Shown here: piece by piece, positions 58,816-59,026 of the stretch
Layout: each line of letters begins with the position of its first letter
Numbering within the stretch: position 1 is the stretch's first letter
Virus record (IMG/VR): IMGVR_UViG_3300042261_001312
Span: 1-64,000 of that record
Direction: 5' to 3' (one strand)
Length of the DNA: 64,000 nt
Translations under genes and position numbers: made by a program
The notes under the pieces: model-generated
What the model saw: only the letters and a program-made list of their open reading frames with translations
What the model was told of the DNA's origin: nothing
Database searches by the model: none

Positions 58816-58852
58816 AAAAAAAAGACCCAACTCTGCACGTGTCGGGTCTTTT
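58816..58852 (-). terminator. Attenuator terminator C
   Basis: AAAAGACCCGAC-acgtgcaga-GTTGGGTCTTTT plus U-run. Confidence 0.85.
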
Positions 58853-58882
58853 GTAAAAGAAAGGAGTAATTAATATATAAAC

Positions 58883-58969
58883 TTACCCGACAGTATATAG
58901 CATATCCTCTGCATCCCATAATAGGACTGCTTCCAATGCCACCATTAATATGTCGAGTACTTTTTTCAT
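58883..58969 (-). CDS. Leader peptide C: MKKVLDILMVALEAVLLWDAEDMLYTVG
   Basis: 22 of 28 residues are D/E/V/L/A/W/M, the amino acids of the downstream tRNAs. Confidence 0.85.
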   Translation of the reverse strand: MKKVLDILMVALEAVLLWDAEDMLYTVG

Positions 58970-58999
58970 CACTTTAATTTTTACTTGTTTTTCATTAAA

Positions 59000-59026
59000 T
59001 ACGTTGCAAATATACAAAAAGTTACA
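59000..59026 (-). promoter_or_regulatory. Composite promoter of tRNA cluster C
   Basis: TGTAAC-N17-CGTA with nested TATATTTG and overlapping GTATTTA. Confidence 0.8.

Follow-up and report, generated by a model that had tools for sequence, protein, structure and literature searches.

A ten-tRNA gene array in a giant uncultivated phage is preceded by a short leader ORF, inferred to be translated, and an intrinsic terminator that could be switched by an alternative helix, and the codons of this leader are almost exactly those read by the tRNAs behind it, suggesting that the phage adjusts tRNA production to tRNA supply through ribosome-mediated (leader-peptide) transcription attenuation. The element lies in the 64,000-nt stretch analysed here (the window; positions 1-64000 of the 327,676-bp contig IMGVR_UViG_3300042261_001312), which has about 31% G+C and carries 33 tRNA genes, all on the minus strand. 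Full-text literature searches, including a check of one survey of attenuators, found no description of leader-peptide attenuation of tRNA genes or of phage tRNA arrays. The function of the element is inferred from sequence in the absence of expression data, and we consider this mechanism likely.

The first-pass annotation had proposed that an octamer at the end of the leader (TGTCGGGT) pairs with a second octamer downstream (ACCCGACA) such that a ribosome at the stop codon would mask the antiterminator, and that the leader uses all four Leu codon types matching four Leu tRNAs. The positions and letters of both octamers are exact, the second being the 5' arm of the terminator, and the proposed interpretation is supported. 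The 28-aa leader peptide, MKKVLDILMVALEAVLLWDAEDMLYTVG, is encoded by CTC, TTA x2, TTG and CTA x2 for Leu, GTA/GTG/GTC x2, GAC/GAT x2, GAA/GAG, GCA x3, TGG and ATG x3 together with a few codons for other amino acids. The argument from four Leu codon types is, however, not significant alone, as six random Leu codons at the usage of this genome touch all four Leu-tRNA classes 32% of the time, and CTC is in any case fixed by its role in region 1. Its generalisation, that every isoacceptor of the array is sampled, is significant (see below).

Coordinates of the tRNA-array attenuator (element C), its sister elements and associated features. Coordinates refer to the window unless L017 is given, which denotes sequence of the same contig just beyond window position 64000.
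Feature	Coordinates	Strand	Description
C, promoter	59037..59007	-	Bacteroidota-type; -33 TTTG (59037..59034), 19-nt spacer, -7 box TATATTTG (59014..59007)
C, leader ORF	58969..58883	-	28 codons plus TAA (58885..58883); ATG at 58969; sensing zone codons 4 to about 21; 38 nt after the -7 box and 104 nt before the first tRNA
C, region 1	58958..58951	-	ACTCGACA; codons 4-7; pairs with region 2 (8 bp, one G-U)
C, region 2	58892..58885	-	TGTCGGGT; antiterminator 5' strand; last base of codon 26, codons 27-28, first base of the stop
C, spacer box	58866..58857	-	CTCCTTTCTT; in the 37-nt spacer between regions 2 and 3
C, region 3	58847..58840	-	ACCCGACA; shared by antiterminator and terminator
C, terminator	58851..58812	-	11-bp stem (AAAGACCCGAC / GTTGGGTCTTT), 9-nt loop, run of 9 T; region 4 at 58831..58824
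C, post-terminator motif	58806..58787	-	Consensus GTTCTTTGACATnTTGGAAA; 3 mismatches here
C, tRNA array	58779..52656	-	Asp(gtc), Glu(ttc), Val(tac), Leu(taa), Leu(aag), Leu(tag), Ala(tgc), Leu(caa), Trp(cca), Met(cat); ORFs between them
C, operon-end terminator	52652..52629	-	Immediately after tRNA-Met
Homing-endonuclease genes in array C	58007..58654, 57246..57806, 55406..56119	-	One GIY-YIG/NUMOD3 type with DNA similarity to T4 segA, two HNH type
A, element	39083..38842	-	Leader (39 codons) 39014..38895; terminator 38870..38842; region 2 CGGGTTTTG facing CAAAACCCG
A, tRNA array	38808..33976	-	Cys, Ile, Ser, Phe, Gly, Ile, Cys, Asn, Thr, Arg x3, Gly, Ser, and a CTA-anticodon tRNA (33976..34047)
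B, element	46815..46618	-	Leader 46762..46673; terminator 46643..46618; region 2 GAATCGGG facing CCCGATTC; followed by tRNA-Lys, Tyr, Lys
D, element	L017, about 5846..5655	-	Leader ATG at about 5787; terminator about 5683-5655; region 2 GAATGGGG facing CCCCATTC; followed by Pro x2, His, Gln x3 (His and Gln in the window at 63911..62820)
Stretch between D terminator and first tRNA-Pro	L017, about 5580..5345	-	About 235 nt; starts GAAGAGG, ends with a T-arm-like hairpin plus CCTCTTC
T4 Rnl1-like RNA ligase gene	47707..48798	-	About 1 kb upstream of attenuator and array B
tRNAs with A at anticodon position 34	37790..37861, 57047..57120, 35655..35727	-	Cys(ACA), Leu(AAG) and Arg(ACG)
Third copy of the promoter-proximal sequence shared by A and C	46258..46272	-	TTTGCCACGTATTTA, one mismatch; after array B, in front of a protein gene
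Solitary tRNA-Arg(tct)	10015-10087	-	No leader
Direct repeat, roughly 35 nt	about 10444..10410 and 10124..10090	-	TGTAACCTTTTTAAATTAAGAAACGTATAACAGATA; one copy ends just before the solitary tRNA-Arg(tct)
Similar terminators	5023..5000, 4600..4577, 8330..8307	-	Those at 5023 and 4600 identical (AAAGGTTGCAGAAATGTAACCTTT); that at 8330 differs from them at three positions

The association of leader, terminator and array is well beyond chance. Shuffling the 102 nt upstream of the terminator gave an 8-nt complement of its arm in 0.9% of trials (p = 0.009 for an 8-nt Watson-Crick complement within 110 nt upstream). A better control is internal to the window: of the 17 minus-strand terminators detected, only the three directly in front of tRNA arrays have such a complement (8, 8 and 9 nt, G+C-rich, p 0.004-0.009), while the other 14 have best runs of 4-7 nt which are AT-rich and not significant. 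Twenty of the 21 residues at codons 4-24 are Asp, Glu, Val, Leu, Ala, Trp or Met, the amino acids of the ten tRNAs downstream, a value reached by 0 of 12,221 windows of the same length from long ORFs. At codon level, using strict wobble rules, all ten tRNAs of the array have at least one cognate codon among the 27 codons after the initiator (0 of 11,837 control windows), and 19/27 codons are decodable by this array compared with 4/27, 3/27 and 0/27 for the other arrays, although two Val codons are GTC, a poor match to anticodon TAC.

The segments of the leader are arranged in a 1:2, 2:3 and 3:4 layout, with duplex energies of -12.7 (1:2) and -14.6 (2:3) and a terminator hairpin of -16.7 kcal/mol. 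With no ribosome, the minimum free energy fold of the full leader contains 1:2 plus the terminator, whereas cutting the RNA after region 3 and placing a ribosome at codon 12 gives a best fold containing 2:3. At equilibrium the terminator wins in every masked fold, and the decision must therefore be kinetic, as in the classical systems, with 2:3 forming before region 4 is transcribed; the model thus depends on kinetics that cannot be computed here. A ribosome with the stop codon in its A site would cover roughly nt 70-99 of the ORF-numbered RNA, which includes all of region 2, whereas stalls with the A site up to about codon 21 would leave region 2 free, an argument that is purely geometric. 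The out-of-set codons Tyr25, Thr26 and Gly28 lie outside that sensing zone and inside it only Lys2, Lys3 and Ile7 are out of set. For stalls at codons 12-21, region 1 has left the ribosome and could in principle re-pair with region 2.

The same design precedes the other tRNA arrays, namely two sister elements in the window (A and B) and a fourth (D) found by retrieving the contig beyond the end of the window. Leader A, rich in Ile/Ser/Thr/Phe/Gly/Asn/Arg/Cys, has 32 of 38 codons decodable by array A, leader B has a Lys/Tyr-rich core with nine Lys/Tyr codons among codons 2-16, and leader D has the core PQPQQHP in front of Pro, His and Gln tRNAs. The four arrays serve 8 + 2 + 7 + 3 = 20 amino acids with no overlap, and 32 of their 34 tRNA genes have a cognate codon in their own leader. 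The masking geometry differs among the four elements, as in element B the stop lies 22-24 nt beyond region 2 (22 nt in the window), unlike in A, C and D, so that masking of region 2 by a ribosome at the stop does not hold for all four. The leaders contain TGT and CTC codons that would be read by the three tRNAs with A at anticodon position 34, of which only the Arg case is usual in bacteria. The last gene of array A is an amber suppressor (labelled Pyl by ARAGORN); TAG ends only 2 of 73 long ORFs, but the ORFs of the window do not require TAG read-through. The stretch between the D terminator and the first tRNA-Pro might be an interrupted tRNA, although it is not called by ARAGORN and gives no Rfam hit.

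Further evidence comes from relatives. A scan of viral contigs with the promoter pattern found 16 loci in 9 jumbo-phage contigs. Most of 120 metagenome hits to a leader pattern were chance matches, but filtering for a downstream tRNA left 11 true loci, an ORF/terminator filter recovered one more (locus L047), and two synteny searches added others. A detector requiring a terminator, a tRNA within 450 nt, an upstream complement of at least 7 nt and an ORF ending at it returned 34 hits falling into the same four families. Seventeen distinct C-type variants from more than 20 contigs keep the promoter, a 27-34-codon leader, the helices and Asp-Glu-Val-Leu-Ala-Trp arrays, and the stop codon overlaps region 2 by one base in 13 of the 17 and lies 0-12 nt after region 2 in the other four. 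In an alignment of 14 sequences the antiterminator is paired in 91% of cells (24-52% in slid controls) and four of its eight pairs change on both sides, while the terminator is paired in 96% of cells with four compensatory pairs. Three-way covariation was observed, for example GTCGGG/CCCGAC/GTCGGG becoming GTCGAG/CTCGAC/GTCGAG in regions 2, 3 and 4 of the related locus L008, and two other related loci have ATCGGGTTT facing AAACCCGAT (L056) and TCAGTCGGGT facing ACCCGGCTGA (L027). The 1:2 pairing is present in the relatives, with 87.5% of cells paired, but region 1 was fixed by the retrieval pattern and no covariation could be seen; synteny-derived relatives carry TTCGAC, which still pairs.

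Amino-acid replacements in the leaders stay within the set of the array behind them, with a pooled 73% in set against a 35% background for C, 85% against 41% for A, and 36% against 5% for D. Codon-position periodicity in the leader ORF is weak as evidence of translation (mean entropy 0.48/0.70/0.78 for positions 1/2/3), although this is explained by within-set swaps among GTN, GCN and GAN codons, as Val, Ala, Asp and Glu codons differ only at position 2.

Support for the promoter comes from conservation, as the consensus alone is not enriched over shuffles in this AT-rich window (7 found vs 5.4 expected). A near-identical promoter precedes element A and the 16 loci of related phage contigs, and a second sequence variant in relatives keeps TTTG-N19/20-TAnnTTTG. 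This promoter type is not exclusive to attenuators, as a third copy of its proximal sequence sits in front of a protein gene. No minus-strand terminator and no canonical promoter match was found between the attenuator terminator and the operon-end terminator. The host is probably a member of Bacteroidota, as evidenced by the promoter type, the lack of Shine-Dalgarno motifs (3 of 73 ORFs against a 5% background), and the best cellular homologues of a phage sugar dehydrogenase, which are Flavobacteriaceae and relatives at 59-65% identity. Among isolated phages, no close relatives were found at DNA level and the closest share only about 33% protein identity.

Two further conserved sequences flank the terminator. 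The spacer box is present in 15 of 17 C-type variants (ACCTCCTTTCTT in some relatives) and absent from types A, B and D, but could not be assigned a partner. Pairing with the purine stretch after the U-tract was attractive by eye in about 10 variants but was not better than shuffles by duplex energy or by longest run (Fisher p = 0.34), pairing with the GAGGAT codons of the ORF fails in variants with GAAGAT, and a role in blocking phage Shine-Dalgarno sites is countered by the absence of such sites. The post-terminator motif occurs in the window only after the terminators of elements A and C and is exact in 13 related loci; its restriction to attenuators and lack of fixed -33 spacing speak against a general phage promoter, but it may be a processing site or a second entry point that bypasses the attenuator.

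We posit that host RNA polymerase starts at the Bacteroidota-type promoter and that the leader is translated as soon as it is transcribed. If charged tRNAs for Asp, Glu, Val, Leu, Ala, Trp and Met are plentiful, the ribosome would run to the stop codon and cover region 2, allowing region 3 to pair with region 4 and transcription to end at the U-tract before tRNA-Asp. If any of these tRNAs is short, the ribosome would stall at one of codons 4 to about 21, keeping region 1 from region 2, which would pair with region 3 as soon as it is made, preventing the terminator and allowing read-through into the ten tRNA genes. Without translation, 1:2 would form and then 3:4, resulting in termination. Because the leader samples every isoacceptor encoded in the array, and the sensed molecules are the operon's own products together with those of the host, the inferred circuit is negative feedback, an OR gate over ten tRNA species that holds their supply at the level translation demands. 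Translation of the ORF, coupling of ribosome and polymerase, and the direction and size of the response are inferences.

An alternative with the same mechanics, which we consider unlikely but not exclusive of the above, is that the switch reports host charged-tRNA status in general, for example during amino-acid starvation or tRNA cleavage or depletion by host defence or by the phage itself, and acts as an induction or timing switch rather than a homeostat. A ribosome cannot tell host from phage tRNAs, the leaders use mostly common codons of the phage, and the T4 Rnl1-like RNA ligase, a tRNA-repair type enzyme, lies next to the Lys/Tyr array, which hints at a link to anticodon-nuclease defence. 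However, the sampling of every isoacceptor and the tracking of array content by leader composition across four paralogues and many orthologues are what feedback on the array's own products predicts. It is very doubtful that the ORF encodes a functional micro-protein followed by its ordinary terminator, with tRNAs transcribed from their own start sites, for instance at the post-terminator motif: the peptide is well conserved (LDIL...LLWADAED), but four unrelated peptide compositions each mirror the tRNA set behind them, region 2 covaries with the terminator arm, ordinary terminators in the window lack such a complement, and the motif has no fixed spacing to a -33 element (8 nt in the window against about 16 in the related locus L078). 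Chance coincidence of a short ORF, a terminator and a complementary octamer, conceivable in an AT-rich genome with many short ORFs, is effectively refuted by the composition, control and covariation results.

Leader-peptide attenuators usually precede amino-acid biosynthesis or synthetase genes, whereas the genes controlled here are ten tRNA genes plus homing-endonuclease ORFs. The enterobacterial thr and ilv (ilvGMEDA, ilvBN) leaders likewise appear to combine codons for several amino acids with alternative hairpins, a stall at any regulatory codon giving read-through, but they control biosynthesis enzymes and sense 2-3 amino acids, while the phage leader samples 7 amino acids and 10 isoacceptors and has no sequence or Rfam relationship to them. 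The E. coli trp attenuator (trpL) has the four-segment layout and probably a similar order of helix stabilities; in trp the regulatory codons sit in region 1 and the stop lies between regions 1 and 2, whereas here the codons are spread between regions 1 and 2 and the stop lies inside region 2. The pheST (pheM leader) attenuator also seems to regulate a component of the translation apparatus according to charged-tRNA level, but its target is a synthetase and it senses one amino acid. T-box riboswitches make a terminator/antiterminator decision that depends on tRNA status but bind uncharged tRNA directly, without translation, through Stem I, a specifier loop and a T-box sequence; no Rfam T-box hit was found even at E <= 10, and the phage leader is an ORF of conserved length and frame. 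Only tRNAs reach Rfam gathering scores in the window, and the best non-tRNA hit on 58760..59060 scores 19.9 bits against a threshold of 38, to an unrelated sRNA model. The rnTrpL/peTrpL system of Sinorhizobium meliloti, in which the terminated attenuator transcript and leader peptide have trans functions (PMC7968998, PMC7298713), is a precedent for a second role of the roughly 180-nt terminated leader RNA with its conserved box, but no evidence for any trans function was obtained here.

More broadly, we consider it more probable than not that a clade of roughly 330-360 kb phages of Bacteroidota carries a four-channel tRNA homeostat, in which the tRNAs for all 20 amino acids are split into four operons, each gated by a leader-peptide attenuator whose codons sample the isoacceptors of that operon. 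This would be the first case of tRNA genes under ribosome-mediated attenuation, and a built-in sensor that switches phage tRNA supply on when host tRNAs are scarce, depleted or cleaved. The system offers a testable handle on whether phage tRNAs compensate for codon-usage mismatch, host tRNA decay or anticodon-nuclease defence, on what multi-input attenuation looks like when up to 13 tRNA species are sampled in one leader, and on whether compact, orthogonal tRNA-level sensors can be built for synthetic biology in Bacteroidota. How phages control their tRNA genes, and why large phages carry near-complete tRNA sets, is largely unknown, and a leader that reads out the very tRNAs it controls would be a direct, self-correcting link between translational demand and tRNA synthesis.
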